From Camelus dromedarius (taxonomy: Eukaryota), in assembly GCF_036321535.1 (NCBI RefSeq), contig NC_087455.1, forward strand, positions 1,984,001-2,048,000: a stretch of DNA of 64,000 nucleotides, read 5' to 3'. Shown here in pieces: positions 3,580-63,420 of this stretch. The stretch's first letter is position 1. Each line of letters starts with the position of its first letter. The position numbers and the translations under genes were made by a program. The notes under the pieces are model-generated. The model had not been told where the DNA came from and searched no databases. It saw only the letters and a list, made by a program, of their open reading frames with translations.

Positions 3580-6500
3580 TACAAAGAACCAAACTCATCT
3601 TTCCACCTCCAGTCACGAGGGGATGATAAAGTCTGGAACTACCCTCCTGTTACTAAAAAAAAGAAACAAAAACAGAAAATTGCACACAAATAAATGAAAC
3701 AACTCTTTATAGATAATGAGCCTTGGGCAATGTGGGATATAGTTCCAGAGGGAAGGGAGACAGACAGTGGAAGATGTGCCATGGGGCAGGATTTCCTCCT
3801 GGAGACAATGTCTGGACCACAACACTGGGATGGGGGCCCCGAGCAGAGCTGGTAAACTTGGCCGAGGTGAATGGACAGAGATCAGAGTCCTGGAAGGTCA
3901 AGGCAGGTGGAATCTGCAGGACAGAGTTATGGAGAGAAACCAATTACATAGAGAAAAAACTCTAGAAATTGCACAGGGTCCCTTATAGTCTGGCTAAATA
4001 CCAACACGCACAGGTGCAGGGCAAGGAGATATGAATTAAACAAAGCCCAGGGTTCACAGGGCCCGGAGCTCCCTCCAGCCATGCTGGAGAGGCCTCGCTG
4101 AATACTTAGGGCACTCAGTGCAGAGCTCAGAACAAGAAAGGGAGCTCAGTTAACGCTACACTAAACACTATTCTAAGCCCATCCCCAAAGAGCCAACAAC
4201 AAAAAAAAGGGAATAAAAGGATCAAAATAACCCCCAGGTAATAGAACTGATGGCTGAGAAAGCCCAAAGCTCTTTAAAGGAATACAACAAAACCCAGCAT
4301 TCAGGAGCATAAAATCACCAATGCTGTGATTCATTTTCTTAAAAAAAAAAAGTAAACATTCAAAGAAATAGGAAATTTTGATCCATATCCAGATGGAAAA
4401 TCAGTTTAATGAAAACAGCTTAGCAACAGCAGAAATAATGGAATTGTCAGGCAACATATTAACAGGTGTTATAAAATGTGATTTATAAGCTCAAAGATAT
4501 AAACAGTACAATCGACACCTGAGACAACAGCATCACCAGACAGAATTAATACCTGATTAGACACCAAAGGAAAAAAATACCAGGGAACTTGAAGACACAG
4601 TGATATATTTGATTTGGAGAGAAACAGAGTCAAAGGACTACAAGTGTAAACAAAGCCTCGGAGACATGTGGGATGGCACCAAGTAGTCTGACGCCTGGGA
4701 ACTGTGGTCCTGGAACACGGGGAGGGGGAGGGCCGGCAGAGAACACATCTGAAGAGATCATGGCGAACTTTTCCCCTAAACTTTATTTTAACCTTTTCTT
4801 TACAAATCCAAGAATCCCTTTAAACCCCACTGCAGAATGAACACACCCATCACCACCATCACCGCCAAAAGCACCACCATCATCAAGACACAAGATGAAA
4901 GAAAAATCCAAAAATTGGCTAGAGAGAAAGACAGAAAGCAACAAGGAGCAGAAATAAGAACATCACTGGCTTCTCCTAGTTTACGCAAGCCGGACGCGGC
5001 TGGAATAAAACCCCTGCCAACCTAGAAGTCTATCTGCAATGAAAATGCACTTCAAAATCAAACTCAACATAAAGCCCTTGAGACAAGCAAAAGCTGAGAA
5101 ACTGCGTTGCCCACAGAGCAGCTCTGTAAAAACTGCCCCAGGAAACTCTTCAGGTAGAAGGAGTTGACACCAGATGGAAACTTCATTCTGCACAGACATG
5201 AGGAATGCTGGAAACTGTTAAGCAGACGTGTAAAAAACGTGCCTTTTCTTCCTAATTTTTAATTTTGTTTAAAAGATAATCCACTAGTTATAGTGAAAGT
5301 AAAGCAATGCAAAATAGGGTCAGGAAACGGGCAGCGGTAAAAGGCGTAACAATAGTCACTCGGGGTGGAGGGGGGAGTAAAATCTGAAAGGCTTTACTCT
5401 ATGTGGGAGCTCGTAGGACAGTATTTTAAGGCAGATTGTGGTCACTCAGCCCACGTGTTGTAAACGCCTGCCCAGTCACAGGAGGAGGCACAGAGGTGGA
5501 GCTCACCAGCCGGCGGAGGAGACAAAGCGTGATCCTGAAAGCACCTGAGACAGGAGGAGGGGAAGAGGGGCGACGAGCAGACACACAAACATAAAACTAG
5601 TGGCAGGAGAATAGATTCAAATCCGACTACTTAGATGATTACATTGAATGTGAAGGGTATAAACACGCCAGCTAAATACAAATGGTCAGACTGGGTTAAA
5701 AAAACAAGTTTTTTTTGACTCTCTGTTACTTACTAGAAACTAGCTTTAAATATAAAGACACATATCATTTAAAAGTGGAAATATCTATGCCATCTAAACT
5801 CTAATCTAAAGAAAGCTGGAGCGGCTATATTATCAGAGAAGCAGACTTCAGGACAAGAAGTTATTATTATATATATGAGAGAATAAAGGCATATCATGGT
5901 AATATAGGGCTAGATTCATCAAGAAAACATAATGATCCTAAATACGCACGCACCAAATAGCAGTGCTAGTCTTTAGGAAAATACTAGTAAATTAAATCGC
6001 AGTGCATAAATAGGATAATACACCGTGACTGACTGGGGTTTACCCTAGGAATCTAAGGTGGAGTTAATAGATGAAAAAGTTAACCCATGAGAATAAATTA
6101 ATTTTCCATATTATAAGAATAAAAGGGAAAAGATGGTATTCTTAGTAGATGCAGAAAAAGCATTTGATGAAATTTAACAGCAATTTATGATAAAAAAAAA
6201 AAAAAGCTAACATTGTCCCCTAATGCTGGTAATAGGTTCCCACCCCCACCATTTCTATTCAGGATTGTATGTAAGTCCTAGTCAGTGTAAGAAAGCAGGA
6301 AACAGGAATGAAAGCATACATTTGGGAAGAAAGAAATAAAACTGTCTTTATTTGCAAGTGGCATGATTGTGAACAGAGAAAATTCAAAAGAATTCTAGTT
6401 AGTGAATTTAGCAAAATCACAGAATACAAAGCCGCTACATGAACATCAATTGTATTTCTACATACTAGCAATAAAAAGTTGTTGATTGGTATGAAAAATT

Positions 6501-6900
6501 GATTTTTTATAAAGATACCAAGGTAATTCAATGGAATAAAGAACAGTCTTTTCAACAAATGATGTTGAAATAATTGGATAAACAAATGGGAAAAAAAACT
6601 TCACCTCCAACTTCATGAGCAAAAGTTTAATTGAAATGGATCATAAATCTAAATGTAAAACCTAAAGCTACAAAACGTCTGGACAAAATCATAGTGTGAA
6701 ATACTATTTGGGATAAACACAGATTTCTTAAGTAGGCTCTGAATAAGGATAAACTGCAAAAGAGAATATTGATAAATTGGGCTTCGTCAAAACTAGAATG
6801 TCTACTCTTGGAAAGACACTGTTAAGAAAATAAAATGCAAGATACAGAAAAGGAGAAAATATTTGCAGTATGTATATCTTGTAATCAGGACATATAAAGA
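3580..6900 (+). mobile_element. Old LINE-1 (L1MD/L1ME-like): 5'UTR, decayed ORF1, endonuclease region, internally deleted RT region
   Basis: 5'UTR motifs (ctctagaaattgcacagggtccc). ORF1 C-terminal remnant IIKTQDERKIQKLAREKDR (4837-5025). EN start gattacattgaatgtgaagggtataaac (~5637). RT motif gatgcagaaaaagcatttgat = DAEKAFD (~6148). Many stops and frameshifts. Confidence 0.85.
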
Positions 6901-7090
6901 TTTTTTATCAAAGTATAGTCTGTTTACAATGTGTCAGTTTCCAGTGTACAGCACAATGTTTCAGTCACACATGTACATGTATATATTCATTTTCATATTC
7001 TTTTTCACTGTAGGTTGCTGCAAGATATACAGTTCCCTGTGCTATACAGAAGGGATGTTGTTTATCAATTTCATATATATTTTAAGTTTG
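6901..7090 (-). mobile_element. 5'-truncated young LINE-1 3' end (cetartiodactyl, camelid-like) inserted into the older L1
   Basis: ttttttatcaaagtatagtc..tttacaatgtgtcagtttccagtgtacagc..tttcagtcacacatgtacatgtatatattc..gttccctgtgctatacaga resembles the remembered artiodactyl/camelid L1 tail. It interrupts the host L1 at catataaaga. Confidence 0.75.
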
Positions 7091-7560
7091 TAAGAAGAAG
7101 ATAAGAGACCCAATGCAAATGGGCAAAAGATTTGAACAGACATTGCAAAACAAGACATACTAATGGCCAATAAACACACGAGAAGATACTCAGCATTACT
7201 CCACACCAGGAAAGCGCATGTCAGACCACCCGGGGCGAACACAGCACGCCCGTCAGAGAGGGCGGACTTGAAAGGTCTGACAGCGTGCAGTGCGGACAGG
7301 GACGCGGAGCAGGTCAGACTCTGGCGCATTACTGATGGAAATGTACAAACCGTTTCGAAACTCTTTTGGCAATTCCTTTAAAGTTAAACACACACTTATA
7401 AAATTATCCAGAAATTTCACTCCCAGATATTTACCAAAAATAAATGAATACATGTATCCACATGAAAACTCACATCGCCATGTTCACAAAAGCTTTGTTC
7501 ATCATAGCCAAAAGCTAGAAACAACCCAGGTATCCGTCAACATGTGAACGGATAACCACG
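7091..7560 (+). mobile_element. Continuation of old L1 (ORF2 3' end / 3'UTR)
   Basis: aatgggcaaaagatttgaacagacatt...taatggccaataaacac...catagccaaaagctagaaacaaccca. Confidence 0.85.
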
Positions 7561-8605
7561 AGCAAGCAAAGACACTAGTAGCCAAGGGGGACTCATCAAA
7601 ATGTAAAACTTCTGTGCTTCAAGAGGCTGTCAAGAAAGTGAAGAAGAAAAACAAACACAGAATGCGAGAAAATGTTTTCAGCTCATGTTTCTGATAGGTC
7701 CCAGCGTGAGGAACTCTTATAATTCAGCAATAAAAAGACACGACACATTTTAAAAATCAGACACAGGCCTTGAACAGACATTTATCCAAAAAATGGAAAA
7801 GGATGCACAAATGTCCCATAAGCACATTAAAACATACTCCATGTCATTAGTCATCAGGGAAATGCAAATTACATCCACAGTGAAATATCACTTCACACCC
7901 ACTAGGATGGTTATAATCAACACAAGGGACAATGACAAATGTCGGGTGTAGAGAAATTAGAACCTCGTACACTGCTGGGGGGATGTAAAATGAAGCAGCC
8001 ACTTTGGAGAAGAGTTTGGCAGCTCCTCACAAAGTTAAACATAGAGTTACCACTTGACTCAACGATTCTAATTCTGGGTATACACTCAAAAGAACTGGAA
8101 AAATATATTCATGCAAAAACTTGTACACAGATGTTCATAGCAGCATTCTTCATAAAAGCCAAGAGATGGAAAAACCCCAATGTCCAGCCACTGGTGAATG
8201 AAGAAACAAAATGTGGTCTCTCTGCACGGTGGAACGTTATTCAGCCGTGAAGAGAAATGAAACACTGATACAGGCTATAACACGGGTGGACCTTGGCAAC
8301 ACTGCGCCAAGCAAGGTAAGCCAGGCACGGAAGACTGGCGCTGTACGATTCCATGCATGTCACGTCTCCACAGCAGGCCAGTCCGTAGAGACAAGAAGTG
8401 GACTAGTGCTTGCCGGGGGTGGGGTTAGAGAAAGTGGGAGGGGGACTGCTTTGGGGGTGTTGAGAATGTTCTAAAATTTTATAGTGGCCCTGGTTGTACA
8501 ATTCTGTAAATGTACTAAAAACCGCTGAATTGTGCATTTTAAAAGAGTGAATTTTATGGTAGGTGAATTATATTCCAATAAAGCTGTTTTTAAAATGGAA
8601 AAAAA
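7561..8605 (+). mobile_element. L1MB7/8-like 3' end nested in the old L1
   Basis: cattagtcatcagggaaatgcaaatt..cacttcacacccactaggatgg; the diagnostic tail gtgaattttatggtaggtgaattatattccaataaagctgtttttaaaa at ~8547-8595. Confidence 0.85.
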
Positions 8606-9020
8606 GATGAACAGACAACCAAATTACAGTATTTGCATACTATGGAAATAAAAATAAACATGAATAAACAACTGAAATATGTAGATACATGGCTGAATCT
8701 GAAACCTGTGCCGAGCCTACGAGCCCCGACGCAGACGCGTGTGCAGCTTCGTATCCCACGCACCCGAGCCGCCGGAGGGCTGATCTGACTTGCGGCGACA
8801 GGTCACAGCGCGGCGGGGCCTGGGGCTGAGGCTGCGGGGCTGGCTGGGATAGAGAGAGCGCCAGGGACCTTTCGGGGCTGGTGGAAAGTCTTTTATCATT
8901 ATTGTGGTGGTGGCCAAACAGGTGTATAAACCTGTCAGAATTCATCCAGATGTAAGTTCAAAGCGGGTGGATTTTGTTGTGTGTAATCTATCCATCGATG
9001 CAGGTGACTTTTAGAAAAGA
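8606..9020 (+). mobile_element. Resumption and 3' end of old L1ME-like element
   Basis: Picks up where 7560 left off (acaaccaaattacagtatttgcatactatggaa); tail attgtggtggtgg..ggtgtataaacctgtcagaattcatc. Confidence 0.75.
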
Positions 9021-9437
9021 ACAAAACTTCCTCACCCATGGATCTATACGTGCAGTTGATTGATAATTAGCCTAAGAAGCATGTGAGTGTGTATTTAAAG
9101 TACTTATTACGGTGGTGTTCTCTGTGGGTTTGGGTTGCAGCCCAGTTCCACTCTGCTAGGGAACCAGCAGGGCTTACTCAGCAGCTAACTCTGTGCCGGG
9201 CACCAGGCAGGCCGAGCAGAGCCCTGACACCACTGCATCCACGTCTTCCTCTGGGGCAGGTGCACAGACAGCACTTGCCTAAAGAGCTGTGCATCGTGTA
9301 AGACGCCGAGTGCCGTGGGCACGGCGCGGACAGGCAGCCTCAGAGAGGAGGTCTCGGGGGACCTGAAGGATGAGTGGGCTCGGATGCTGGTAGGAGAACC
9401 TGGCAGAGTAATTGTGCGGGGCATTCTGCCTGGCAGA

Positions 9438-9467
9438 TTCTTCGTTTCTTCGTTTCTTCGTTTCTTC
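9438..9467. repeat. (TTCTTCGT)n, about 3.8 copies
   Basis: ttcttcgtttcttcgtttcttcgtttcttc read directly. Confidence 0.9.
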
Positions 9468-9479
9468 ATCCGTGTCGTT

Positions 9480-9720
9480 GTGTGTTAGTCAGGAAAGCCT
9501 GGACTGTGCTGCAGAAACAAATAAACCTCCTTCCATCATGTAACTGCCATCTGGACCTTGGGGCTCCCCCATCCCGGGGGCTGAATCATCATGGCAGGTA
9601 GCCGTGACCGGGGGCGGCTCCGTCACTGCTGCCAACGTTCCGCTGGCCTGGCCTCTGTTGCACGGTGCTGACGTCACTGCATGGAGGGTGGGAAACGTTG
9701 TCCACCCACAGCCCACGCGG
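9480..9720 (-). mobile_element. MaLR LTR, MLT1J/K-like, internally deleted
   Basis: Starts tgtgttagtcaggaaagcctggactgtgctgcagaaacaaataaac; later cactgctgccaacgttccgctggcc..gcatggagggtgggaaacgttgtcc. Confidence 0.6.
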
Positions 9721-23690: not shown

Positions 23691-24577
23691 CCACGTGCCT
23701 CCCTCACAGCATTTACGGGCTGAGTCAATTACAGGAACACATTTTGCCCCTGACTTCAGGAGGGACCGCGGCTGCCTCGTCCCTGCCCTCCCAGCGCCGG
23801 ATCCCTGTCACTTTTCTGAAGCTGCCGCGGCCAGCGGGCCTCCCCTCCCAGAACTCACCCCCTCTGAGCTGCACTATCCATCACCCCTAACTGGACGCAC
23901 TCCCGCCCGCCCCCCCCGGGGACCGTCTTCTCTGTCCTGTCTCCCCCCACAGCCTCCTTCCTGCTGCCTGCCTTCTTTCACTCTGATGAGATTCCAAGGC
24001 TCCGGCTCCAGGGCATCTCATCCACTCCAGCACCGTCAGCTACCGCCTGAGTCTGGGGAGAGCCAGGCCCGCGAGTCCAGTCCTGCCCTCCTCCTGCGCT
24101 CCCATCTCTTCCCTCCAACGTGGAGCGCCTCACAGGTGCTGCTCAGAATAACTAGCAGCGTTCATTGTGTTTTCTTCCCAAGTGACTCTACTCCCCGGCT
24201 CAGGGGCTGGCCCAGCTGCAGGCCGGGCGGCGGCTGGGCTGTCTCATCCCGAGCTCGGGGCCTCTTTCAATCGCATTCACACGGTTGGCAGAATCAACTT
24301 CCTTTCGCTGCAGGCCTGGGGTTCCCTGCGGCCTCTCCAACGACAGGTCAGGCAGGCCTTCCGCTTTCCTCCGGGCCTGCAGGAGAGGCTCCCTCTTGGG
24401 CCACATTGGGTTCACATAATAGTTTAATGACTGGAGTGACCCCCACATTTGCTACACAGCACAACCCAATCAGGGGCACGGTTACCCCATCATTTTAAAT
24501 CCCTCCCTGAAGGGGTAGATTGTGCAGGGTGAGCACGCAGGAGGGGGAGGGGGATTCTGCCAAGCACACTCCTCCCA

Positions 24578-24681
24578 CTCCCGCCAAGCTGTCCTGGGAA
24601 GGACCTCCCCTCCCGCCAAGCTGTCCTGGGAAGGACCTCCCCTCCCGCCAAGCTGTCCTGGGAAGGACCTCCCCTCCTGCC
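24578..24681. repeat. Minisatellite, 32-bp unit CTCCCGCCAAGCTGTCCTGGGAAGGACCTCCC, 3 perfect copies plus a partial copy
   Basis: Units at 24578-24609, 24610-24641 and 24642-24673, read directly. Confidence 0.95.
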
Positions 24682-25264
24682 GGGCTCTCCTGGGTGACAC
24701 ACAGAGGGCCTTCCCTGGGCTTTCTGCTGTTTGCACCTCAGGGTCCACATGGTGGCTCAGGCACAGGGTGGCCTGATGAGGATAAATGACCCAAAGCATT
24801 CTCTTTCCTCAGGACACACGCTGGACAGCTGCAGCCCTGGATCACGTGGCAGTCATCGGCCAACAGCCCCCGAAGGCAGGAGGTGGGACACGGACAGGGG
24901 TGTGGTCTGTCGATGCCTCCTCCCGGCCCTCGGCCACGGCGGCCCCACCAGGGAGGTTCCAAAGGTGACTGAATCCAAGAAGGATGATGTCAAAAGGAGG
25001 CTCCTCAGGGAAGAAAGTTCCACAGTCTTGTCTCCACGTCCCCTCTGGCCCAGTGGCTGTTCAGATTATCTGGGGTCACCAACAGCTTGGGGAATCGGAT
25101 GAGGTCGATGGACCTGCTGCAGAAACGGTGCAGACACACATATAGACACACACCGTTTTGCTTATGCTCCTCATGATTGTCAGGGCTCACAGTCCCCTCA
25201 CCGAGATCAGAGCCCACGGGACCACCTGAAAGACTGTTATCCCAGCCTGTGCCACTAACTACAA

Positions 25265-26030
25265 AGAATAAACAACTGAGAAGATAAAACTAGGAGCCTA
25301 CCTCATTGCAAACACAAAAATAAATTCCAGCTGGATCAGACACCTAAATGTGAAACTCAAAACTGTGAACATTTTTAAAAAGCATGAGAGAGTGTTTTTA
25401 TTGCGTTTTAGTGGGGCCAATACCATCAACACACACATCGGAAGAAGCTAAACAACCCAGCAGGAAGATGGACAAAGCACAGGGGCAGGCGACTCAGGCG
25501 AGGGAACCCGACGGCCGACAGAGGCTGGAGGACATGCTCATCCACACCGGCCATCGGGGGAAGCAACCACGGACGCCGTGACGCGTACTCTCACGTGCAC
25601 GGTCCGCAGTGGCCGCTGCGTCTGGCAGCACCAAACGTCGGCAAGAACGTGAGAAACAGGAGCCCTCGTGCACTGCCAGCGCGGGCAAGTTGCTGAGCCG
25701 CTCCGGGGAGCGGTTTAGCAATTCCTACAGAAGCTGAAATTGCTCTGCTCCTCAAGGACCCGCAGTTCCACTCCTGGGCGGCACCCTGAGAGGTCCCCAC
25801 ACGTGTTCACAAAGCTTGTTTGCGGACTGCAATCTATAACAGCAAACTGTCGACCAAAACTGGGTCTCTGACTGGGGAAATGGGGCACACTGGCGAAAAC
25901 TAAACAAGAGTTAAAATGTGTGAATCTGCAGGTATTGGTGTGGAGGGATCGCCAAGACCTACTCCTGAGTGAAAAGGCAAAGAACAGACATCAAAAGAAG
26001 TGATGCAACATTGTGAGCTGACTGGGGTCC
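25265..26030 (+). mobile_element. L1ME-like ORF2 3' end / 3'UTR relic
   Basis: aaacacaaaaataaattccagctggatcagacacctaaatgtgaaa; gacccgcagttccactcctggg; ctgagtgaaaaggc. Confidence 0.8.
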
Positions 26031-26779
26031 CCTCCCCCAGCTTTAAAAACAATAAGATTGCTGAAGGAGCTGGGCTGCACGGCACTTGGCCACTGCTGCG
26101 TCCCCCAGCTCGGTGGGAACACAGCAGCCCACGGGGTCTGCCCTGGGAAGGGACGTGACCCCAGAGAGAGGAGGAGGTCCTGCTGGGGGGCCCAACAAGC
26201 ACACACAGGTTTCTCACTGCCGGTCAGGGCCCCGTAGGAACCCTAGTACCCAGTCCCTGTGCCCAGCCCCTCCCCCCCGGGGCAGCCCAGGGAGCCCGTT
26301 TCCTAGTAGAGAGGTGCCCTGCCTGCTCTGGCTTCTCCTGGGCCGCCGTTTCACACCCCACTTCTTTCCTCGCTTGTCAAGGAGCAGGGGGAGAGAGGGG
26401 GCCAGAGGGGCAGACCAGGGCCCCTTTGCCAACCCCAGTCCTGCCACTCCAAGTCGCAGAGTCCACACCCCTTTCCTCTGCTATTTCCCCGTAGGTTTTG
26501 AAGAACTTTCTGTGATCAAATTGTGAAGAGTGTCCTGAGGGAAATAAGGAGGGCGCTGTCGGGTGGACAGGATGGGTTTCTCGGAGGACCTGATGTTTGG
26601 GCTGAGAACTAAAAAGAGAAAGATCCAGTAATTTGGGGAAATAATTCTCTTTTCAGGCAGAGAGAACGAAAATAGCAAAGGCCCCTCAATCAGGAAAGTC
26701 TGGTGAGCTCACGGATCACAAAAGAGGCCAGTGTGGAGGGTGCAGTCGGGGGGGAGGAGTTAAAGTCAAAGAGGATACA

Positions 26780-27125
26780 GACTGAGCTCCAGTTCTCATC
26801 ACTGCCTGAGCCCCAGTCCTGATCACTGACTCAGCCCTGGTCTTGATCACCTGACTGAGCCCTGGTTCTGATCACTGACTCAGCCCTGGTCCAGATCACC
26901 AGCTGAGCCCAGATCATATCCTGAGCCCTGACCGTGGTGTCACAGGGAGCCCTGACCCAGGGCTCTGTCGCACATGGACCCCTGACTCTGGTCACAGACT
27001 GGGCCTGGATCATCATAACAAACCAAACTCTGATTCCTGGTCATAGAGTGAGCCCACATCTCTGGTCACAAGTTTATTCCTGGTACCGCTTATGGGCTGA
27101 GCCCCGAGTCCTGGTCACATTCTGA
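26780..27125. repeat. Degenerate ~24-bp tandem repeat (GATCACTGACTCAGCCCTGGTCYT-like)
   Basis: Repeated gatcac(c)tgact(c/g)agccctggt units that decay into ctgagccc/ctggtcaca variants. Confidence 0.8.
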
Positions 27126-27788: not shown

Positions 27789-28129
27789 CTGGGACAGGAC
27801 AGGGAAGAGGGCGTGGCCACACATGGCTGCGATGCGTGTCAAATAATGACACCTGTCATTAGTAACAGGGCAAATGCCTGCTATGGACGGACCAGGGCAA
27901 GACTGTCCAGGAACCGCCCAGAAAACCAGCAGGACAGGGGTGTTCGAGCTGTCCTTTCTCCTCCTGGCTTAGGCCCGTGGATCCCAGACCTACAGGGATC
28001 CTTTCCACGTCACCAGGTCTGGGGTCCATGCAATGGTCCGAGAACCGTCTCCATGCCCCTGCCCACCTCGCCTCCCCCAGGGCCCCTGCCCCCCCCCTCC
28101 CCCAGGGCCCCTGCCCACCTCCTCCTCCA

Positions 28130-38350: not shown

Positions 38351-38354
38351 GCCG

Positions 38355-38560
38355 GGAGGCCACGCGGCGCCGTGGCAGAGGGCTCAACCCCGGACGGGCT
38401 TCTTGGGACATCGCCTGGCTGGGTAGCACTAGGCAAATGGGGCAACTTCTCCACACCTCAGTTTTCTTACCTATGAAATGGGCGCCTCCCCTCTGGACAT
38501 CACCGTGCAGATTCCATGACAGATGTGAGTAAAATTACTAGACCAGCACGTAGTAGACAA
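38355..38560 (+). mobile_element. MIR fragment adjacent to / within the L1ME relic
   Basis: cacacctcagttttcttacctatgaaatggg core; the 5' part is GC-rich. Confidence 0.55.
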
Positions 38561-39744: not shown

Positions 39745-40240
39745 TGTCACCAGCACACTCACCTCTACCAGCCCTGTCACCACCGTTACTACTGTCATCA
39801 TCATGCCTACCACCACGACTACCACCACCAATAATACAACNNNNNNNNNNNNNNNNNNNNNNNNNNNNNNNNNNNNNNNNNNNNNNNNNNNNNNNNNNNN
39901 NNNNNNNNNNNNNNNNNNNNNNNNNNNNNNNNNNNNNNNNNNNNNNNNNNNNNNNNNNNNNNNNNNNNNNNNNNNNNNNNNNNNNNNNNNNNNNNNNNNN
40001 NNNNNNNNNNNNNNNNNNNNNNNNNNNNNNNNNNNNNNNNNNNNNNNNNNNNNNNNNNNNNNNNNNNNNNNNNNGGGAGCACTGTCATCATGTCACTAAC
40101 TTCACCATGATCATAACCATCACCAGAAATCTCAGCACCAGCCCCCGCATCCCCAGGACCTAACACAATTCCTGGCTTACATCAGGTTCTCAAAAAGGTT
40201 GTACAAATGAGCTACCATCACCTCCATCACCACCTTCCGA
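39745..40240. repeat. (CAC/CAT)n low-complexity region spanning an assembly gap
   Basis: caccacc/catcatc motifs on both sides of the N run. Confidence 0.75.
39841..40074. other. Assembly gap (234 N)
   Basis: Run of n characters. Confidence 1.
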
Positions 40241-42244
40241 ATCACTCATTTCACTCTGAGGGGAGGTCCCCCACCTGTCCTGCCAGGATTACACCCATAT
40301 CCAGGCATTGGCTTGAGGAGAGTTGGCCCTTATCCCCACATGTCCTGAGTGAGCTCTGAGACATGGAGATTTGGGGAATGTCCTTTGTGCTGATGAGAGA
40401 TGCTGTAGGCCTCCTGAGCTGGCCCCACCCTTGGCCCCAGCCAGAGACCCTTTATTGCTGGGCTGCACTCCTACGTACCTGTGTACGTGTGCACCTGCGG
40501 TCAAGCTCAGCAGCGGGGCCTGGTCCCCCGCCCCCCTGGTGATCTGCCCTCCATCCTCCCGCCAAGAGCCTCACTTCTTCCTGCACAGCCCACCACTGAA
40601 GGGCCTGCCATGGTTTCTAAGCCTACCGACTAGACCCAGTCCCAGTTCCCTCTGCCTCTGAGACCTCTGTGCTTTGCCGGTGATGAGTGCCTTAGACTGG
40701 GCTCCCCAGAAATAGTCCCTGCAACAGGTCCGTGTGCAGGTTTTGGCATGCGCAGACAAGGGGGCGTCCAGGGGGAGTAAGGACAGAAGGCCAGTCCACA
40801 AAGAGTGTCGCCGGCCTCGGCTGCTCAGCCACAGTGACCCAGGCCCTGGGGCAGCTGAGAACCTGCCCCAGCTCTCCCCACCCTCAGCTTCCCTCCTGCG
40901 CACCGCATCCTGACCGCATGGACCTTTCGGTTCCTGCAAAGAGCCAGGATCCTGCAGCCCCAGGGTCCCCGCCGGGCTCCTCTGTCTACCTAGAGAGCTC
41001 TCCCTCACCTCCACTCCCTCAAGGGCACTCCTTCAGGCAGCCCTCCCTGACTTCACACAAGACGAGGTCTCTCTGTCCTGCGCCCCCTGAATGTTTCACA
41101 CCTACCACTCAAGGAGCCCTGTCACACGAGCTGAACGACTGAATGAGTGTCGCATCTTTTCCTAGACAGTTGTGTCCACCCCACCCGGAAAACAAGGAAG
41201 CTGGCTTTTCACTTCTTTCATTTTGGACAAACCAAAGTGAGGAGTCAACCTGTGCAGGTGGAAAAGAAACAGACATCAAACTGGCTTGGGAAGCCCAGAG
41301 GGGCCACGGGGACCAGGCAGCCTTAAAGTCAGGGAGCTGAGGCCCTGGCCCCAGAGAAGTCCATCTTGTCCCCCAAGCCCAGTCCGGCCATCCCTGCCAT
41401 GACCGGGAGGGGTGCTGGGAAGAGGCACTTCTGGCTCGTTCTAACCCTGCGGTCCTTAGAGAGCAGGAGACAGCACAGACCCAGGATGGGGACAGCCTTC
41501 CCTCCTGCATCTCAGCCGTGTCGGCGCTGCTGTGTGCCTCCAGTCCTAGGACTCTCTTTCCGGTTCGGTGGAGGAGAAGGATGCTGACAGGCACTGTCCC
41601 CACCATCCCCACTCCCTCCACCCATTGTAAAGGGCCCTCGCCTGCTCCTCTCAACATAACAGTGTCTTCTGAAATGACTTCGTTATTATCATCTTTAAGT
41701 GACATCCTCCAACTGTGCGGTCACCCCTTGGAGCCTAATGGGAACTGACAGCTTCTCTAGAAAGAATGCCCCAGTCATCCATCTGCAATTTGCCATGAAA
41801 TATGTTTCATTAAGATGCCAGCTGGGCAAGCAGGGAGTCACCACCTCCTGGCCACAAGCAGATCCAGAGCCAGGGTGGGAAGGGGCACCACCATGCTCCC
41901 TGCCGCGCCACTCACCGTGGGAGGGACTGTGGACAAACCGCTGAAACCTGCTCTGGTTTGGTTTCCTCGCCTGTAAAGAGAATCGTAATTGGCGCTTAAG
42001 GCGGGCACAGGGCGTGGTGAGGGTTGGGTCCTCCGGAGAGGGTCTACTGGACGCTGCGGACATCTGTCCTGCACCAGCCCCAACAAGGACGCAGGCGTGG
42101 ATGCCAGCACGCAGGCGCTGACACAGCACTTGGCACTGACACGCTGACACCCACGCGCAGACTGCAGACCCTGACGCAGAGCTCCCGCAGCAGCACCGGC
42201 ATGACCCTGGTGACAGCAGACCCCACCAATCGTCCCGTAGCAGA

Positions 42245-45719: not shown

Positions 45720-45754
45720 ATAACCTTGATAAGAAGTAAAGATATGTTACTCAG

Positions 45755-47294: not shown

Positions 47295-47965
47295 AACCAG
47301 CCACACCCAGAAAAATCCAAAGAAAATAGATGATGGAAATCGACTATGTACCACTTCTAGAGAGAAAAGACGCCTCTAAGGTTAGAAATAATGGAAGACA
47401 TAGCTAAGGAAAAATGGGTTACTTTGGATTCATGAAAGTGAAAAATTATATTATGACAAAAATAAACTCAAACCAAAATGAAAACCAATACTCCATTCCA
47501 AGCAATGAAGAAATATGTATCCAAAACTTCAGATGAATTTAGGTGCAGACCAGTATTTCCCTTTTATTATCTGCCCTAGACAACAGTCTCAAATTGAGAG
47601 GAAAAAAAATAAGCTTTTGACACAAAGGGTTTTAAGTGTGGCAGTTTACACATGAAAATACGGGAAATAATATGAATGCTTGACCACAGAGGGAAAGCTG
47701 TATATTACGATTCATTCTCACAATAAAAAATTAATCAATGAAAATCCTAAGACTCTGCAGCGGCACACGCAGGGGGAGCCCAGGGCAGGGACCTTGTAAG
47801 CACGGCCACGCGGCAACGAAGCCCGCCGCGCAGAACGGGAGGTGCCGAAAGGACACGCACTATGACCTCAGCAGAATTTGCATCCAGCGGGAGGCTTCCT
47901 CCCTGCCTTTCTGATTTTCAAACTCTTCTTAATGACTGTATGTGCCGTGTGTACTAAAAAGAATC
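47295..47965 (+). mobile_element. L1ME4-like fragments
   Basis: catagctaaggaaaaatgggttactttggattcatgaaagtgaaaaatt; tail ttctgattttcaaactcttcttaatgactgtatg..taaaaagaa. Confidence 0.6.
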
Positions 47966-51926: not shown

Positions 51927-51985
<59 letters not shown>

Positions 51986-57250: not shown

Positions 57251-59869
57251 GTCGTGGGCATCCCTGTGTGGGGCTGATCAGAGAAGGCATATGAACGCTT
57301 TTTCTCAATTCATCACTTCCAGGTCTGCCCTGAGCCAGCCCCTCCCTCAGTGGCCAGGGAGGCAGAGGAGGCCTTGAAGAGAGGCCACTGCTTCTGCACT
57401 CCCCCCTCCCCCTGGAGCCCAGTCTAGAAAGCAATCAGTCTTACACCTATCATAAGTTAATAATAAATGAATTTCCTTGATCGTTTTGCTGACGCTGAGA
57501 TCTAACACGTGCTGTCTGTGACAATAATATATTGCAACAACAGATAATACCCTGAGTGACAGCTCAGCAGAAAAGGTGCACCAGGGGAGTCACATGCCCC
57601 ATGGGCACCTCGGCTGACCAGGAGGGCCCATCTCAGCACTGCTGGCCGGGACAGGAGCACTGGTTCCAGGAGGATGCATGGAACTCGGGGTGTGGTGGGA
57701 GAGGGGCTAGGCAATCGGACCCCAGGGCTCTGGTCCAGCCCCGCATTTGAATGACCATGATCCTGGGCACACCCTGCCCTGGAGAGCTGGAGCTGCCCTT
57801 TCTGTAAAACACGGGGTTTAAGACAATCGAAAATGAGCCAAGGCTGAAGCGGTCGTTTACAGCAGGAAGTCCCTGGGTGGCCGATGAAGACGTGAAAGCT
57901 TGACCACGTGCATCAGTCCCTGAGGAGCACAGCTTAGATCAACCATGTTCACCCATCAGAATGGCGGCATCAGGAGGAATTGTGGCCGTGGGCCTGGGGG
58001 GTGGAGGGGACAGGACTCTTGTGCTGGTGCTGGGCCTCCATGGAGGCTGGGCTCACCATCCAGCTCCTGGGACACAAATCTCACAGGAGTCCATGCAGGG
58101 TGGAGGGCCTGGAGGAGGAGGCACTTCAAATGGCCCAGAGTTTGTATCAACAACCACCCTCAAAGCACCAGCAGCAAGCAGTGACAGGGACCACGGGAGG
58201 CCAGCCGAGGCGGCGGGACTGGGCAGACCCAGACCGACAGGTTCTTGTGTCTGGGGACCGCTGGGGCTTGGCCTGGGCTGGGTGACTGGGACCCGTGGGC
58301 CAAGTGTCCCTCATTCTCCACCGGTGTCAGCTGCTGCCAGGGCCTGTGCTCCTCATTCTGGTGGGCAGGGTGAGAGTGAGCCCCTCCGCACAGGCTCAGG
58401 TCCAGCCTCTGTAACAACCCGCGGCTCACAGCCAGCCGCAGCCAGAGTCAGGGAGCGAGGGGCTCTGGGTCCGGTGGTGAAACAGCCAGGGCATTTCCCA
58501 GTCTACCCAAGAGGAGGCGCCCCCGAGGCCCCTTGCTGGACAGTGCGGGCGGAGGAAACTGCAGCAGCGCTGAGCTGCGAGCAACGTGTCCACCCACAAC
58601 ACGGGCAGCTTCCTTTTTCTGGAAAAACCAAGAAAAAGGTAGATTTATAAGGGAAGCCACCCGACCCGTAGGCCGTATTTGACGAGGGCCCTGCACCCTC
58701 AAGGTCCAAGGAGGCCTTAGAGGAGGTGCCACTGAGAAGAGGACGAGGGGGCCACAGGGGCACAGCTGAGAGACAGACAGGTAAGTCCAGCCCCACACAA
58801 AGTGGAAGGATGGTGTCTGTGGCCCCCAAAGTCCCTCAGGCCCCCTAGCCCGGACAGTCCAGGAACCCAGGCTGGATGACTCCTCTCACAGCAGTGTGAG
58901 CCACGGGTGGACCCAGCTTCTGGCTGCACCCCCACCATGCGGGTCTCCAAGACCAGCACCATGAAAGGTCGGGGTGCAGCAGAGCCTGGGGCCATCCCAG
59001 ATCTCCTGGCCCTGCCTGCATAGGCACAGGTGGGTGCGGGCATTTGAAGAGGGGGAAGGCCCTGGCCCTTCCAGGAGAGAAGCTGGAAGCACCAAGGACA
59101 GCGACCCCTCACCCCGCCAGTGTTCAAGGACCCAGCCCGCTCTCCACCCCAACGGGGAAGCAGCTTGCCTGGGCCCAGGTGGGATTCAAAGCCAAGACTC
59201 TGCCTCTGGGCCCAGCCCCTGCCTCACACGGAGAGGGAGGAAGGGAGGGGAAGAGTGCTCCACGGGGCAAGGCGTCCCACCCATGGTGCCATGCCGCCCA
59301 GGGTAGCCCCGAAACCAGGTAAATTAGGAGAGCACACTGGCTGAAGGAGCAGCTCCCAGGACCCCAGGGGATCAGGGTCAGTTTTGTGTTTATAAGGGAG
59401 CTGGGGAGGCCGGTCTTTGCGCTGCCAACTTCAACAGCTGAGGGGGATTGTCCCGCAGCCAAGCCCCAGGCACACTCAACCGTGTCCCGGGCTGGGCATC
59501 CCCCACTCTCCTCCGCCACAGCCCTTATGTGGCTTCCGTGGCCTTCAGGACAAGATCCAAGGCCTGGGTGACACCTCAGGGCCCGCTGTGTGTGCCACCT
59601 GGGCCTACATGTTGCCAGGCGGGAGGGCTTAAATCTCACCCAGGGGTCCAGCCTCTGCCACCAGCTCCCCCTGCCCCCGGAGCCCTCTGTCTCCAGGAAG
59701 TGTCCCCCACCCCCCTGCTCCTACCTAGCTCCTATGCCAGGCCCCAGGCAAGTGTCACCTCTTCCAGGAGGCCCCCCAGGCTGTCTAGACGTCTGGCCTC
59801 CTGGGGACACCTGGTGCTGACCTGTCACAGCAGAGGTGGTCCTCACCGGGCCTCCATCACCCTCCCCAT

Positions 59870-60660
59870 TTCCATTTCACTCCGTCCTCTTCCAGAGACA
59901 ACCACTGGCCAGAAGGGGAGGTTTATCGTTCGCTAGCATTGTCTATTTTTACTGCATTTTTATGTTCCCATAAACCATATATAGCGTTCCTTTGTAGGGC
60001 TTTAAACTTTACATAAACAGTGTGTGACACCGTGCACCACACCGCAGCTGGACGTCCTCACTCAGCGTGCTTTTTTGAGAGTTATCTGCATGGATGACAG
60101 CGGCTCTAGTTCACATTGTTGGCTGTCCTACAGCAGGGCCTTTACTGACTACGTACAGTCTGTGGACCAGCCCCCTGTGGACGGACAGGCAGGCTGGCTG
60201 CAGCATCACTGCAGGGTGCTGCAGGGCTCTGCAGGGAGCGCTCCTGTACACCTCTCTGTGCCTGTCATGAGGAATATTCTAGAAGCAGCATTGCTGGGTG
60301 CAGACCAAGAGCACCGTCACTGACATACTTGTTCCCCAGCGTGGCAGTGCCAGGAACCTCCCCCGGGCCGCAGGTCAGAGACCGCTTGTCCCACATCCTC
60401 AAGCTACTTGCTGCCACTGACTCCTAGTTTTTGTCGACCTGCTGGGTGGAAATGATGCCTTTGAATTAGTTGCCATTTCCCCTGAGTAACAGCAAGACTG
60501 AACTTACTTTTATATATTTATTTGCCATTTTGTTTCCTCTTCGGTGAACTGGCTAGTCAAACTCTTTACCGTTTTCCTACAAGGTTTTTCTGTCTTTTTC
60601 TTATCGACATGCAGTTGTTCTTTGTGTTCTAGACGCTAATATTCTGTCGATTATGCACAT
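59870..60660 (-). mobile_element. L1ME-like 3'UTR / ORF2 end
   Basis: cagagacaaccact..ctttaaactttacataaa..ttgagagttatctgcatg..tgccatttcccctgagtaac..tttatatatttatttgccattt. Confidence 0.8.
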
Positions 60661-63420
60661 TGAAACCACCACCTCCCGTCAGTGAGCAGGGTAGGGAGGT
60701 CTCAGCATTCCTTCATGTCTGGCTTCTCCCCCACGGGATGATTACTTTGAGATTTGTCCATGCTGTTGCTTGTGTCAATAGTTCATTCCTGCTAACTGCT
60801 CAGTCATATTCCAGTGAGTGGGTGGAATGCACCACACCTCGTGCACCATCCCTGTGTTGATGGACAGCTGGGCTGCTGTCAGCTTTGGGCTTCCACAAGC
60901 AAAGCTTCTGTGAACACTCACATGCGTGTCTTTCTGAGTCACACAGTGTCTTTTCTCTTAGGGAGACTGGCTGGGTTACATGGTAGGTGTGATGCTTAAC
61001 TTTTAGGAGACACCAAACTGTGGGTCCAAAGCGGCTGTACCCATCTGCATCCTCACCAGCAGCACGAGGGTTCCAGTCCCTCCACGCCCTCGCCAACCCC
61101 TGACGCGGCGCTCCTTTCTCACTGTAGCCGTCCTAGCGGCCGTGCGCGCAGAGCTGACTGAGGGTGCGAGTTACGCCCTCCTAGCGACCGGCGGTCCGGG
61201 GCGTCCTCCCATGCGCATGTGGGCCATCCGTTTATCTTCGTTCAGGTGGCTGTTCGAATCTCTTGCCCATCTTTATTGTGTTGTTTGTGTTCTTAGTGTT
61301 GAGTTCTGAGAGTTCTTCATGTATTCTGGTGGACGGTCCTTTGTCAGGTATAGAAATCATTTCTTCCCGTCTGTGGCTTTTGTTTTCATTCCCTTAACAA
61401 TGTTTTTGAAAGAACAGATGTTTAAAATTTTGATGCACTTCAATTTGGCTTTTTTAATTATGTTGTTCATGTTATGGCTGAGACATCTTCGCCCAATGTA
61501 AGGTTACACAGGTTTTCTTCCCCCTGTGTTTTCCTTTAAACATTGTGTGGCTCCGCTTCATGGTTAGGCCTACAACTCATTTTTGGCTCATTTTTATAAA
61601 CGATACGAAGCATAGACTGGGTTTCCTTTTTCTCTTTGGCATAGGGATGTCTGATTGTTCCAGCGCCATGTGTTACGAAGACCGTGCTTTTCCCGCGAGG
61701 CTGCTTTTGTAACTTTGTGTGAAAACCGCTAGCCCGTGAGTGCACGGGTCTGCTTGCGCTGTCCGTCCTGTCCCGCTGGCCCACGTGCCTAACTGTGTGA
61801 GTGCCACGCTGCCTCAGCGCCCACGGTACCTACGCAAAACATGAAATACTAGTGATCCAGCGTTCTTCTTTTTTGTAAGTAGTTTTGGTTGCTTTTAAAT
61901 CTCTACATTCCCATTTGAATTTTAGAATTGTTTAATCAATTTCTTTAAAAAAAACTGCTTAGATTTTGATTGGGGTTGCATTAAATCTACAGATCGATTC
62001 TGAGAGGAATAAAACCTTAACAATATTGAGTTTTCTGACATATGAACAGGATGTATCTCTATTTAGATCTCTTATTTCATTCAGCAATATTTTACACTTT
62101 CTCAATATAGAGTTGACCCTTGAACAACACAGGTTTGAGCTATGAGGGTCCACTGATATGCAGATTTTTCCCAATAAACACATACTACAGTACTACACAG
62201 TCCACTGTTGGTTGAATCCATGGATGCGGAACCATGGATACAGAGGGCCAACTGTAAAGTTAAGCATGGATTTTTCAACTGGAGGTGGGTCGGCACCCTT
62301 AACCCCCATGTTGCTCAGGGATCAACTGTGTGGTGTTTTGTGTCTTTTATCAGATTCGTTCCTAAGTATTTCATAATTTTGATGCCATTAGAAATGGTAT
62401 CTTGAAATTCAGTTTCCAATTATTTCTTGGCTCATGACATCCCTTCATTCCTGTTTTAGTATCTGTGGGATCTCTAGTAGAGTTACCTTTTAAAACCCAG
62501 GTGTAGTCTGTGCCTTCTCTCATTTTTTTCTAATTAGTCTGATCCGAAGTTTCTAAATTTTATCCATCTTCTCTAAGAACAAGCTTTTGATTTTCTCTTT
62601 TATTTTTATCTTTTATGTTTCGTTGATTTTTTTCAATCTGATGCTTATCGTTTCACTTCTGCTTGCTTTGGGCTCAATTTGTCCTTCTCCTTCTCGTCTC
62701 CTGAGGTGGGAGCTGCAGGCGTCAGCCCAGGTCTTTCCTGTGTCTAGCTCAGGCGCTTACTGTACGCGCTGCCTCCTAAGTACTGCTTCCTCGGCAAACT
62801 GGAAGTTCCGGGGTGGTGTATTTTCATGTTAATTTGGTTCAAAATACTTTCTAATTTCTCTTTTAGTTTTCCCTTTGACCCATGCATACTTTATAAGTGT
62901 CATTTAAGTTTTTAATATTTAGAGATATTTCATCTATCTTTCTGTTATTGATTTTCAGTGTAACTCCTCTGTGGGCAGAGAATATATTTTATATGACTTG
63001 AATCCTTTTAATGTATTGCGAATTGTTTCATGGCCTAGAATATGATCTAGCTTGGTAAGTGTTTCATATGCCCTTGAAAATAAAGTGGATTCTGTTGGTG
63101 GTGGAGGGTTCCATAAATGTTGATTAAATCAAGCTGGTTGCCAGTGCTGTTCAGATCTTCGATATACTTAGCATTTTGCTGTCTACTTGTTCCATCACTC
63201 ACTGAGAGAGGCATATTAAAACTCCCGGCTGTAATTGTAAATTTCCCTATCTCTCTTTAAAGCTTTTATGAATTTTGAAGCTCTACTATCAGGTGCATAA
63301 ACATTTAGGATCACATTCTCTTGATGACCTGGCCCTTTCATCATTATGAAATGACTTTATTTGTTCCTGGTAATATTGCTTTCCCTGAAATCTAGTTCAC
63401 CTCACATTAGTAAAGCCACT
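60661..63420 (-). mobile_element. L1MB-like 3'UTR and ORF2 relic (interrupted by a MITE at 62110-62328)
   Basis: ttgagatttgtccatgctgttgcttgtgtcaatagttcattcc; ttgattggggttgcattaaatctacagatc; gcatattaaaactcccggctgtaattgtaaattt (endonuclease region, reverse). Confidence 0.85.
62110..62328 (+). mobile_element. Tigger2a-type MITE (Tc1/mariner; laurasiatherian Tigger2a_Art/Car-like)
   Basis: TIRs (c/g)agttgacccttgaacaac ... gttgctcagggatcaactg, with flanking TA/TG target; internal ggatgcggaaccatggatacagagggcc. Confidence 0.9.

Follow-up and report, generated by a model that had tools for sequence, protein, structure and literature searches.

Short GC-rich tracts in old L1 copies of a dromedary camel region are probable footprints of GC-biased gene conversion

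Old L1 copies in a GC-rich window

The window analysed here, a stretch of 64,000 nt of the Camelus dromedarius genome (contig NC_087455.1), has a GC content of 0.545 and a CpG observed/expected ratio (o/e) of 0.42. No Pfam domains were found in the 20 longest ORFs of the window and the search for orthologous ORFs returned nothing; the DNA is apparently non-coding, and GC-rich minisatellites are also present. The window contains 69 patches in which GC is ≥0.62 and CpGs number 6 or more per 100 bp; they make up 23% of its length. Together with the minisatellites and the absence of Pfam domains, these patches fit a high-recombination GC-rich domain. The ten tracts described below are just those that are conspicuous against AT-rich L1 sequence. 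The assembly contains a gap (N) at 39841-40074, within a degenerate CAC/CAT-type low-complexity run that is seen on both sides. Continuity across the gap cannot be established and it was left as is; it lies outside every tract and was neither touched nor spanned by any alignment used.

For the ORF2 C-terminal segment, copy B (7581-8620, plus strand), the best-preserved L1 3′ end, served as the unconverted reference. The translation of 7754-7948 matches residues 1083-1130 of human L1 ORF2p (E=2e-9), and the other L1 copies were linked to copy B by nhmmer with E values of 1e-7 to 1e-28. The 3′ part of copy B (8270-8440) is itself GC-enriched (0.54-0.62), and its comparison with copy I over this part gave a ratio of A/T to G/C (W→S) over G/C to A/T (S→W) differences of 40:23.

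With re-estimated edges, the ten tracts are 122-394 bp long, with a GC content of 57-72% and a CpG o/e of 0.40-0.94, whereas the L1 sequence around them has ~36% GC and the AT-rich L1 flanks a CpG o/e of 0.12-0.38. Two control flanks that had been counted by hand at about 36% GC gave computed values of 0.361 and 0.360. The original prediction placed all ten tracts at 64-70% GC, which held for five; within the boundaries it had drawn, GC ranges from 0.57 to 0.69 and CpG o/e from 0.40 to 1.03. Its description of the tracts as sharply bounded suits most edges: GC steps between adjacent 60-bp windows amount to 0.22-0.48 at the tract edges, compared with window-wide 99th and 99.9th percentiles of 0.32 and 0.40, and many edges lie within the top 1% of steps. 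The CpG o/e reaches 0.79-0.94 in seven of the ten tracts and 0.40-0.53 in the other three (5440-5586, 60018-60392 and 62659-62818). The term CpG-island-like, also used in the prediction, applies loosely. By the definition of Gardiner-Garden and Frommer (≥200 bp, GC≥0.5, CpG o/e≥0.6), islands are found at three tracts: 8681-8900 (220 bp, GC 0.64, o/e 0.87), 25451-25720 (270 bp, GC 0.65, o/e 0.92) and 61011-61260 (250 bp, GC 0.64, o/e 0.92). None of the ten tracts is as long as 500 bp, and none is an island by the definition of Takai-Jones (≥500 bp, GC≥0.55, CpG o/e≥0.65).

An assembly or sequencing artefact could be suspected because some technologies make errors in GC-rich stretches and because the assembly has an N gap at another place in the window. 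Against this, 0.97-1.00 of the sampled 31-mers of 59800-63300, a region that includes four tracts, were present in each of 20 runs from 12 studies, and those of tract 61051-61230 were found in 20 runs. In one run without a flag as possible source, 1.00 of the sampled 31-mers of the region were present. The presence of at least 97% of these 31-mers indicates that the tracts are not an assembly artefact, an origin that is highly improbable.

Collinearity of the tracts with unconverted L1 copies

Collinear alignment to unconverted L1 copies in the window was obtained for six of the ten tracts, with residual similarity above that of dinucleotide shuffles (z from 3.1 to 11); one further tract aligned weakly and three were left with no demonstrable homologue. 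The cleanest case is 61051-61230 (minus strand; GC 0.69, CpG o/e 0.94), in the ORF2 C-terminal (CCHC) segment of copy C (tract C). It is collinear with 7782-7974 of copy B (186 versus 193 nt; z 8.5-11), with a W→S:S→W ratio of 62:13, compared with 76:56 in the flank. The biggest clean tract, 25456-25800 (plus strand; GC 0.64, 28 CpG, o/e 0.79), occupies the ORF2 C-terminal region of copy D (tract D) and is collinear with 7769-8128 of copy B (321 versus 360 nt; z 6.7-8.8), with ratios of 104:29 in the tract and 45:41 in the flank. In copy E/A, the CCHC segment holds tract 7206-7327 (tract A; plus strand; GC 0.66, CpG o/e 0.85), collinear with 7848-7978 of copy B (136 versus 131 nt; z 5.0-5.8) and with ratios of 38:12 and 58:69, respectively. 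The 3′ end region of copy F, past ORF2, contains 8705-8869 (plus strand; GC 0.72, CpG o/e 0.86), which is collinear with 8293-8463 of copy B (186 versus 171 nt; z 3.1-3.8) and gave 29:12 against copy B and 16:4 against copy I.

The remaining two of the six were alignable in part. Tract 5440-5586 of copy E/A (plus strand; GC 0.62, CpG o/e 0.51) was placed by reading at the inter-ORF or ORF2 start region; 5490-5590 aligns to 63956-63846 of unconverted copy C sequence (GC 0.37) with a ratio of 31:6 (shuffle z 3.4-5.3). Tract 61638-61826 (minus strand; GC 0.60, CpG o/e 0.89) lies ~500 nt upstream in ORF2 of copy C. Its portion 61660-61724 aligns to 6503-6568 of copy E (GC 0.26) with a ratio of 20:4 (z 7.9-8.6), and the rest has no homologue in the window because copy E is deleted there.

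The weak case, 60018-60392 (minus strand; GC 0.59, CpG o/e 0.40), lies just 3′ of the CCHC segment of copy H. Only 60320-60400 aligns locally to copy B (20:8), and the whole tract reaches a z of 1.5-2.1. Its low CpG o/e together with a TpG/CpA excess of 1.56/1.75 gives it the appearance of a decayed, fossil tract. Candidate tract 38026-38419 (plus strand), in the L1-like copy G beside a MIR-like piece, consists of two GC-rich sub-tracts (38060-38200 and 38270-38420) with an AT-rich stretch between them. The flank of copy G (37823-38051) aligns to 6629-6853 of copy E with a score of 88 against a null of 53; the tract itself has no homologue in the window (z ~0 against copy B). The stretch 47755-47903 (plus strand; GC 0.66, CpG o/e 0.79) lies at the right-hand end of a fragment that is L1-like and AT-rich (47300-47750), where GC steps from 0.25 to 0.73 at the left edge. 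No homologue in the window scored above the null, and the stretch may be rewritten L1 or simply the edge of the L1 fragment against GC-rich DNA. Finally, the GC-enriched candidate 62659-62818 (minus strand; GC 0.57, CpG o/e 0.53) was assigned by reading to the EN-RT linker of copy C; searches of the PDB with the tract and with its two flanks returned no match to L1, and it has no homologue in the window, copy E being without this part.

The original prediction stated that homologous copies exist in the window. This was borne out for the tracts it placed at 7200-7335, 25480-25800, 61060-61245 and 8700-8885 (unconverted or differently converted copies), over part of their length for 5445-5590 and 61660-61840, and weakly for 60020-60400 (z about 2). 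For 38060-38420, 47755-47865 and 62700-62820 no such copy was found in the window. These observations bear on the possibility that the tracts entered as separate insertions of GC-rich DNA, or that they are older DNA beside younger AT-rich L1 sequence, in which case their edges would be element boundaries. The absence of demonstrable L1 homology in 38026-38419, 47755-47903 and 62659-62818 is compatible with such an origin, and the tract at 47755 sits exactly where the AT-rich L1-like fragment meets GC-rich DNA. However, for six tracts the alignment runs from flank through tract to flank, the lengths agree and the residual similarity is significant; these six are therefore not insertions, and insertion as the general explanation is decidedly unlikely.

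Three to four copies are GC-rich over one ORF2 C-terminal segment, as would be expected if the tracts came from a GC-rich L1 subfamily or by ectopic conversion from GC-rich L1 copies. Contrary to this, the W→S sites show no correlation between tracts A, C and D (Fisher p 0.24-1.0), and these tracts are no closer to each other (42-53% identity) than each is to copy B (48-54%). Self-comparison of the window revealed no near-identical donors. A subfamily or donor origin, ruled out within the window by the independence of the W→S sites and the lack of such donors, can hardly be credited.

Substitution bias in tracts and flanks

Substitutions were scored as unpolarised pairwise differences to paralogues in the window, tracts A, C and D each being compared with the single reference copy B. 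Pooled over seven tracts, the W→S:S→W ratio is 304:84, compared with 320:295 in the flanks (Fisher p=2e-17), so that the predicted W→S excess confined to the tracts was recovered against the copies in the window. In tracts A, C and D, W→S changes per W site rise 1.7-fold, from 0.328 in the flanks to 0.551 (p=3e-11), and S→W changes per S site fall 2.1-fold, from 0.454 to 0.216 (p=1e-9). S→W transitions are halved, and S→W transversions alone are reduced 2.6-fold (0.064 versus 0.167, p=1e-4). In contrast, the classes neutral to GC-biased gene conversion (gBGC) do not differ between tracts and flanks, either for A↔T (0.076 versus 0.086, p=0.62) or for G↔C changes (0.116 versus 0.104, p=0.69). 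It follows from these equal rates that tract and flank have the same age, which again argues against insertions. GC* reaches 0.72 in the tracts, compared with 0.42 in the flanks.

A comparison of GC-rich with AT-rich sequence gives a W→S asymmetry from composition alone. For this reason, the argument rests on the collinearity, on the retention of ancestral G/C sites in the tracts (63-71%), on the W→S transition:transversion ratio (149:55, p=3e-11 against 1:1) and on the unchanged neutral classes. Taken together, the substitution pattern is that of a fixation bias, namely gBGC; it is not explained by mutation, by editing through ADAR, by a mosaic of ages or by a GC-rich L1 subfamily. The alignable tracts show the collinear point substitution with W→S excess that had been predicted; in addition, S→W changes are depleted, transversions included, and the neutral classes are unchanged.

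Hyper-editing of L1 RNA by ADAR before retrotransposition also yields sharply bounded clusters, in this case of A→G changes, and a local RNA hairpin would place several tracts on one L1 segment, as seen here. Nevertheless, T→C changes (0.38 per T site) match A→G changes (0.42 per A site, p=0.51), A→C and T→G changes are also present, at symmetric rates, S→W changes are depleted, and the overlap of tracts on one ORF2 segment agrees with chance (P=0.55). An edited retrocopy, in which only A→G changes on the sense strand are expected, was ruled out for tracts A, C and D by this strand symmetry, and editing can be given almost no probability as an explanation. Selection on tracts exapted as regulatory elements or promoters, with GC and CpG favoured for function, would be in line with the CpG-island-like composition. 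It does not account for a W→S bias that is uniform and strand-symmetric over nearly all W site classes and is matched by an S→W deficit, nor for the presence of 69 such patches in an apparently non-coding stretch of 64 kb; a low-power search found no sequence motif shared among the tracts. Selection is accordingly regarded as very improbable.

Local germline hypomethylation without recombination, for example in a small protein-bound low-methylated region, would stop CpG decay and raise GC through an altered mutation spectrum. The contrast in CpG o/e between seven of the tracts and their flanks points in this direction, and the halving of S→W transitions is what a loss of methylation would predict. 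However, S→W transversions, which are independent of CpG methylation, are also depleted, and the rise of W→S changes per site is left unexplained. Hypomethylation as the sole cause is unlikely; it could readily accompany gBGC, as it does in the model proposed for the dog.

Proposed origin of the tracts

The tracts are probably footprints of gBGC acting at very narrow sites (~120-390 bp) in old L1 copies, in a region subject over a long time to strong GC enrichment linked to recombination. The source of the bias would be meiotic heteroduplex repair at recurrent double-strand-break sites, or hotspots, which may have been in use for a large part of the time since L1 insertion; we infer this tie between tracts and hotspots from the substitution pattern. 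The W→S and S→W ratios yield concordant estimates of B=4Ne*b (1.14 and 1.34). Relative to the flanks, the time-averaged B would be at least ~1.2, a value diluted by the changes of the reference copy itself. The bias appears moderate and not extreme, and the strong intensity originally claimed was overstated. The rewriting is real and proceeds as gBGC would predict, yet the process is of a known kind.

The new CpGs would be a by-product, because W→S fixation makes CpGs and counters their loss. The seven tracts with high CpG o/e may be recently active or unmethylated, and the three with low o/e and TpG/CpA excess may be fossils in decay. Primate CpG islands are reportedly maintained or created by biased gene conversion, as Cohen, Kenigsberg and Tanay are said to have proposed in 2011. 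Shared with that proposal is CpG-island-like sequence as a by-product of gBGC and not of hypomethylation or selection; the camel tracts differ in being shorter than standard CpG islands.

Comparison with known systems

In primates, gBGC tracts predicted by phastBias are clusters of W→S substitutions that are themselves clustered along the genome and enriched in GC-rich, telomere-proximal DNA. The median length predicted for humans at high B is 276 bp. The tracts occupy 0.33% of the genome, at a median spacing of 24 kb (Capra et al., 2013, PMC3744432). The camel tracts are likewise short clusters of W→S changes in the same size range, attributed to gBGC. Unlike the primate tracts, which are defined from polarised substitutions on one short branch (PMC3744432), the camel signal is unpolarised and cumulative since L1 insertion, and it is far denser, as 64 kb contain ten clear tracts and 69 patches.

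Dog GC peaks are defined as 500-bp windows with ≥1.5× the GC of a 10-kb background and are ~1 kb long (Axelsson et al., 2012, as in PMC4053742). They are located at stable PRDM9-independent hotspots and are regarded as a cause as well as a result of recurrent recombination accompanied by gBGC (PMC4053742). The feedback loop through unmethylated CpGs suggested in the original prediction derives from this model. The camel tracts resemble dog peaks as local spikes of GC and CpG, but they span 120-390 bp, and in a scan of the window for peaks of the dog type no position qualified (maximum ratio 1.33). Counting against the proposed origin, tracts of ~150 bp whose edges are almost step-like fall below the width of dog GC peaks and of the GC* peaks reported at hotspots. 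Further points against it are that three of the ten tracts lack a demonstrable homologue and a fourth aligns weakly, and that the low-power motif search found nothing shared among the tracts.

GC* peaks reveal recombination at hypomethylated sites that resemble promoters in 39 of 52 mammals, most of which retain Prdm9 (Joseph et al., 2023, bioRxiv 10.1101/2023.11.17.567540). Such sites offer a mechanism by which narrow places of gBGC could be long-lived in a species that is not a canid. The sites in that study are orthologous to mouse Prdm9-/- hotspots and for the most part correspond to CpG islands or promoters, whereas the camel tracts lie in dead L1 copies, and camels do not figure in the text and supplement searched. 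No study of camels dealing with PRDM9 or fine-scale gBGC turned up in the literature searched. The suggestion that the process is not described in this lineage could therefore hold, as absence of evidence.

Further, extreme GC-rich regions of the sand rat and gerbils, which involve many genes and affect coding sequence, have been attributed to gBGC (PMC7574485). These share with the camel window a runaway local GC enrichment in a mammal that is attributed to gBGC; the camel patches differ in being sub-kilobase, in lying in non-coding repeat relics and in their apparently moderate time-averaged bias.

Composition, boundaries and read support of the GC-rich tracts

The window as a whole has a computed GC content of 54.5% and a CpG observed/expected ratio (o/e) of 0.42, and its AT-rich blocks, two large ones (4-9 kb and 60-64 kb) and several small ones (near 12, 25, 31, 38 and 47 kb), consist of old L1 copies. 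The ten GC- and CpG-rich tracts of the original prediction, taken with their proposed limits, showed a GC content of 0.57-0.69 and a CpG o/e of 0.40-1.03, so that the predicted GC content of 64-70% held for half of them and not for the rest. The value of about 36% GC obtained by hand for two of the flanks was reproduced almost exactly (0.361 and 0.360). Tract edges were then re-estimated by locating where GC changes most from one 60-bp window to the next, giving lengths of 122-394 bp and GC steps of 0.22-0.48. Because the 99th and 99.9th percentiles of such steps across the window are 0.32 and 0.40, it is fair to describe the tracts as sharply bounded. With the re-estimated edges, the CpG o/e was 0.79-0.94 in seven tracts and 0.40-0.53 in the other three, against 0.12-0.38 in the L1 flanks, and the lowest value of the ten belonged to tract 60018-60392, which has a marked excess of TpG/CpA. 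This spread suggests that recently active or unmethylated tracts may be mixed with decaying fossils. When patches were defined by a GC content of at least 0.62 together with at least 6 CpG per 100 bp, 69 of them were found, covering 23% of the window and lying mostly in its 9-60 kb centre; the ten tracts are just the part that is readily seen.

The GC-rich bases are real and not an assembly artefact: the 31-mers sampled from 59800-63300, a region that holds four of the tracts, were present at 0.97-1.00 in 20 public runs from 12 studies, among them runs that carry no flag as a possible assembly source. The run of N at 39841-40074 falls within a degenerate low-complexity stretch of CAC/CAT type, seen on both sides of it, and all tracts, alignments and counts used here lie clear of this gap.

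Collinearity of the tracts with dead L1 copies

Plain self-BLAST of the window revealed almost no paralogy, and the copies of the L1 3′ kilobase were tied together by relaxed-scoring BLAST and nhmmer, positions 61960-61997 being masked from the nhmmer comparison onwards. The copies recovered were E/A (6777-6870 plus 7078-7558), B (7581-8620), F (8606-9030), D (about 25350-26190) and, on the minus strand, C (61438-60703), H (60684 to about 60020) and I (31985-31413). Copy B has the best-preserved 3′ end and was used as the unconverted reference. Its translated segment 7754-7948 matches residues 1083-1130 of human L1 ORF2p (E=2e-9), and copy B is therefore near the ancestral coding sequence. It was the only one of the pieces searched that matched human ORF2p, since protein searches with the rewritten pieces and the short flanks of copy C against human L1 ORF2p structures returned no L1 match.

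In a four-way MAFFT alignment, tracts 7200-7335, 61060-61245 and 25480-25800 share columns with ordinary AT-rich sequence of copy B, their lengths are close to those of the corresponding stretches of B (136 versus 131 nt, 186 versus 193 nt and 321 versus 360 nt, respectively), and aligned L1 flanks are present on either side of each. Tract 8700-8885 can be aligned to copy B at 8293-8463, 5490-5590 to unconverted copy C at 63956-63846 and 61660-61724 to unconverted copy E at 6503-6568. For these six tracts (7200-7335, 61060-61245, 25480-25800, 8700-8885, part of 5445-5590 and part of 61660-61840), the tract was more similar to its homologous stretch than were 300 dinucleotide shuffles (z 3.1-11). 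The signal was weak for 60020-60400 (z 1.5-2.1), and a search within the window found no homologue for 38060-38420, 47755-47865 or 62700-62820, so that the presence of homologous unconverted copies in the window, as originally proposed, holds for the six aligned tracts and is weak for the seventh. Tract 47755-47865 may simply be the border between an L1 fragment and GC-rich DNA. A placement of the tracts of a further L1-like copy, G, at B-model positions 100-235 and 300-430 was not supported, with z about 0 and conflicting G-E and G-C alignments. The observation is real, with numbers somewhat overstated, and can be demonstrated in six to seven of the ten tracts.

Substitution spectrum and its causes

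The substitution spectrum was obtained by comparing tracts 7200-7335 (A), 61060-61245 (C) and 25480-25800 (D) with copy B, and their flanks with copy B in the same way. Changes from A/T to G/C (W→S) reached 0.551 per W site in the tracts and 0.328 in the flanks (p=3e-11), while changes in the opposite direction (S→W) fell from 0.454 per S site in the flanks to 0.216 in the tracts (p=1e-9); S→W transversions taken separately fell from 0.167 to 0.064 (p=1e-4). The two remaining classes were alike in tracts and flanks, at 0.076 and 0.086 for A↔T (p=0.62) and 0.116 and 0.104 for G↔C (p=0.69). The differences between tract and flank are therefore restricted to the classes sensitive to GC-biased gene conversion (gBGC), W→S and S→W, and run in opposite directions. 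Tract and flank are of equal age and have received an equal underlying mutation input. Insertion, or a mosaic of different ages, is excluded for the six aligned tracts, which are collinear with L1 and show the same neutral-class divergence as their flanks. When seven tracts were pooled, the W→S:S→W count was 304:84, compared with 320:295 in the flanks (p=2e-17), confirming that the W→S excess is confined to the tracts. A chance alignment of GC-rich with AT-rich sequence can be rejected, because it predicts neither the excess of transitions over transversions among W→S changes (149:55, p=3e-11 against 1:1) nor the retention of 63-71% of ancestral G/C sites in the tracts.

The data also remove two further explanations. 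Hyper-editing of L1 by ADAR before retrotransposition predicts A→G changes only, but T→C, at 0.38 per T site, was about as frequent as A→G, at 0.42 per A site (p=0.51), and there are A→C and T→G changes too. If a GC-rich L1 subfamily were the source, or if GC-rich copies had converted one another, derived bases should be shared, but W→S changes in A, C and D fall on statistically independent sites (Fisher p 0.24-1.0) and the mutual identity of these copies (42-53%) is no higher than the identity of each to copy B (48-54%). Local hypomethylation may accompany the process, but on its own it does not explain the spectrum, leaving the rise in W→S and the fall in S→W transversions unaccounted for; transversions of the S→W class do not depend on CpG methylation, and their fall is for this reason not due to hypomethylation. 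Selection for function may have acted on any single tract, but it predicts no such uniform spectrum and gives no reason for 69 patches in a window whose 20 longest open reading frames lack any Pfam family.

All four substitution classes follow the prediction of a fixation bias, and gBGC acting as such a bias is well supported. The two ratios give concordant values for the population-scaled bias relative to the flanks (B=1.14 and B=1.34), which are lower bounds since the differences are unpolarised, partly saturated and include changes of copy B itself. The implied equilibrium GC is 0.72 in the tracts and 0.42 in the flanks. The hotspot origin, the persistence, the feedback and the PRDM9 component of the original prediction are putative. 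Orthologous open reading frames across 7206-7327, which were sought for dating the change, gave no matches.

Overlap of the tracts on one L1 segment

The tracts in copies E/A, C and D and part of that in copy H overlap on the CCHC region of ORF2, at B-model positions of about 364-394. In the window this segment corresponds to 7848-7974 of copy B, with homologues at 7200-7335, 61060-61245, 25480-25800 and about 60385-60400. Sequence-directed targeting of the CCHC segment was considered and dropped as a claim after a permutation in which every tract was re-placed at random inside its own copy: an equal depth of overlap arose in 55% of random placements (P=0.55), and in 67% when copy H was left out. 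The tracts are long relative to the predominating L1 tails of roughly 1 kb. No CTCF-like motif was matched in any of the tracts, and no 6-8-mer shared across the ten exceeded dinucleotide shuffles. Copies B and F have another GC-enriched stretch in common, at about 700-860 of the B model. In copy B, a GC-enriched stretch absent from the original prediction (8270-8440, 0.54-0.62 GC) is homologous to tract 8700-8885 of the adjoining copy F and has a W→S:S→W count of 40:23 against copy I.

Relation to known recombination landscapes

The occurrence of gBGC, its tie to GC-rich domains and its making of CpG-island-like sequence are established in primates, dogs, birds and rodents, and the present finding therefore extends known biology and does not change it. 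The window is an unusually clean case that needs no database, with converted and unconverted copies of one dead L1 segment lying side by side. If the pattern were genome-wide in camelids, old L1 copies could provide a built-in map of past recombination sites, of service in a lineage that has no fine-scale recombination map, and the CpG o/e of each tract could tell live sites from fossil ones.

Clusters of W→S change attributed to gBGC are well documented in primates. The predicted human tracts, with a mean length of about 1 kb and a median of 276 bp under an assumed strong bias, make up 0.33% of the genome and are concentrated near telomeres (PMC3744432). In dogs, which are without PRDM9, GC peaks mark the stable hotspots; such a peak is a 500-bp window whose GC content is at least 1.5 times that of its 10-kb background (PMC4053742). 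These peaks are wider than the present tracts, and the highest such ratio in the window was 1.33, so that no dog-type GC peak occurs in it. For 39 of 52 placental mammals, equilibrium GC has been taken to show activity of hypomethylated hotspots that do not require Prdm9 (Joseph et al., bioRxiv 10.1101/2023.11.17.567540), and this lends plausibility to long-lived narrow sites in mammals other than canids. That work mentions camels neither in its text nor in its supplement, and a literature search for PRDM9 or fine-scale gBGC in camels returned no paper. It seems unlikely that the camel has canid-like, long-lived and very narrow initiation sites of nucleosome size, independent of genes and working despite PRDM9, which turn dead L1s into small CpG islands at about one per kilobase in GC-rich domains. 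If true, the study of stable hotspots and of the de novo birth of CpG islands would gain a second, independent mammalian model in the camelids. The finding would acquire greater interest only if genome-wide and population data gave a stable, canid-like hotspot landscape in camelids.

Other features of the window

Between 9000 and 60000 the window has 50-67% GC and 60-odd GC/CpG-rich patches, and this part resembles non-coding DNA in which the same GC enrichment has gone far. No Pfam family was found in the 20 longest open reading frames of the window, and Rfam and tRNA scans of 1-61900 returned nothing, ARAGORN finding no tRNA-like SINE heads. Across the 64 kb there is no run of 15 or more A or T, and typed SINE-head patterns had no match anywhere; few young retroposons seem to have inserted in the region.

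A MIR-like core ('...cctcagttttcttacctatgaaatggg...') at 38420-38560 lies next to the second of the GC-rich sub-tracts in copy G, and some of that sub-tract could be a naturally GC-richer MIR head and not rewritten L1. Nested in copy C, about 240 bp at 62100-62340 read as a putative MITE of Tigger/MER type with diverged terminal inverted repeats, an identification made by reading only, the repeat finder (seed 7) detecting no inverted repeat there. Degenerate CAC/CAT runs (His/Thr-like, 'caccatcat') occupy 39760-39840 and 40075-40250 around the gap, and a similar run lies at 4840-4900. GC-rich minisatellites, which are typical of recombination-active GC-rich DNA, are present at 24571-24694, 26780-26910 and 28055-28129, with periods of 32, 24/49 and 25 nt and 3-5 copies. 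Finally, copy E/A is broken between B-model positions of about 101 and 135 by a 208-bp AT-rich insert (6871-7077), which we take to resemble the 3′ tail of a cetartiodactyl-type L1; it lies 130 bp away from the rewritten tract, is free of GC enrichment and contains a 27-bp tandem duplication (6926-6977).
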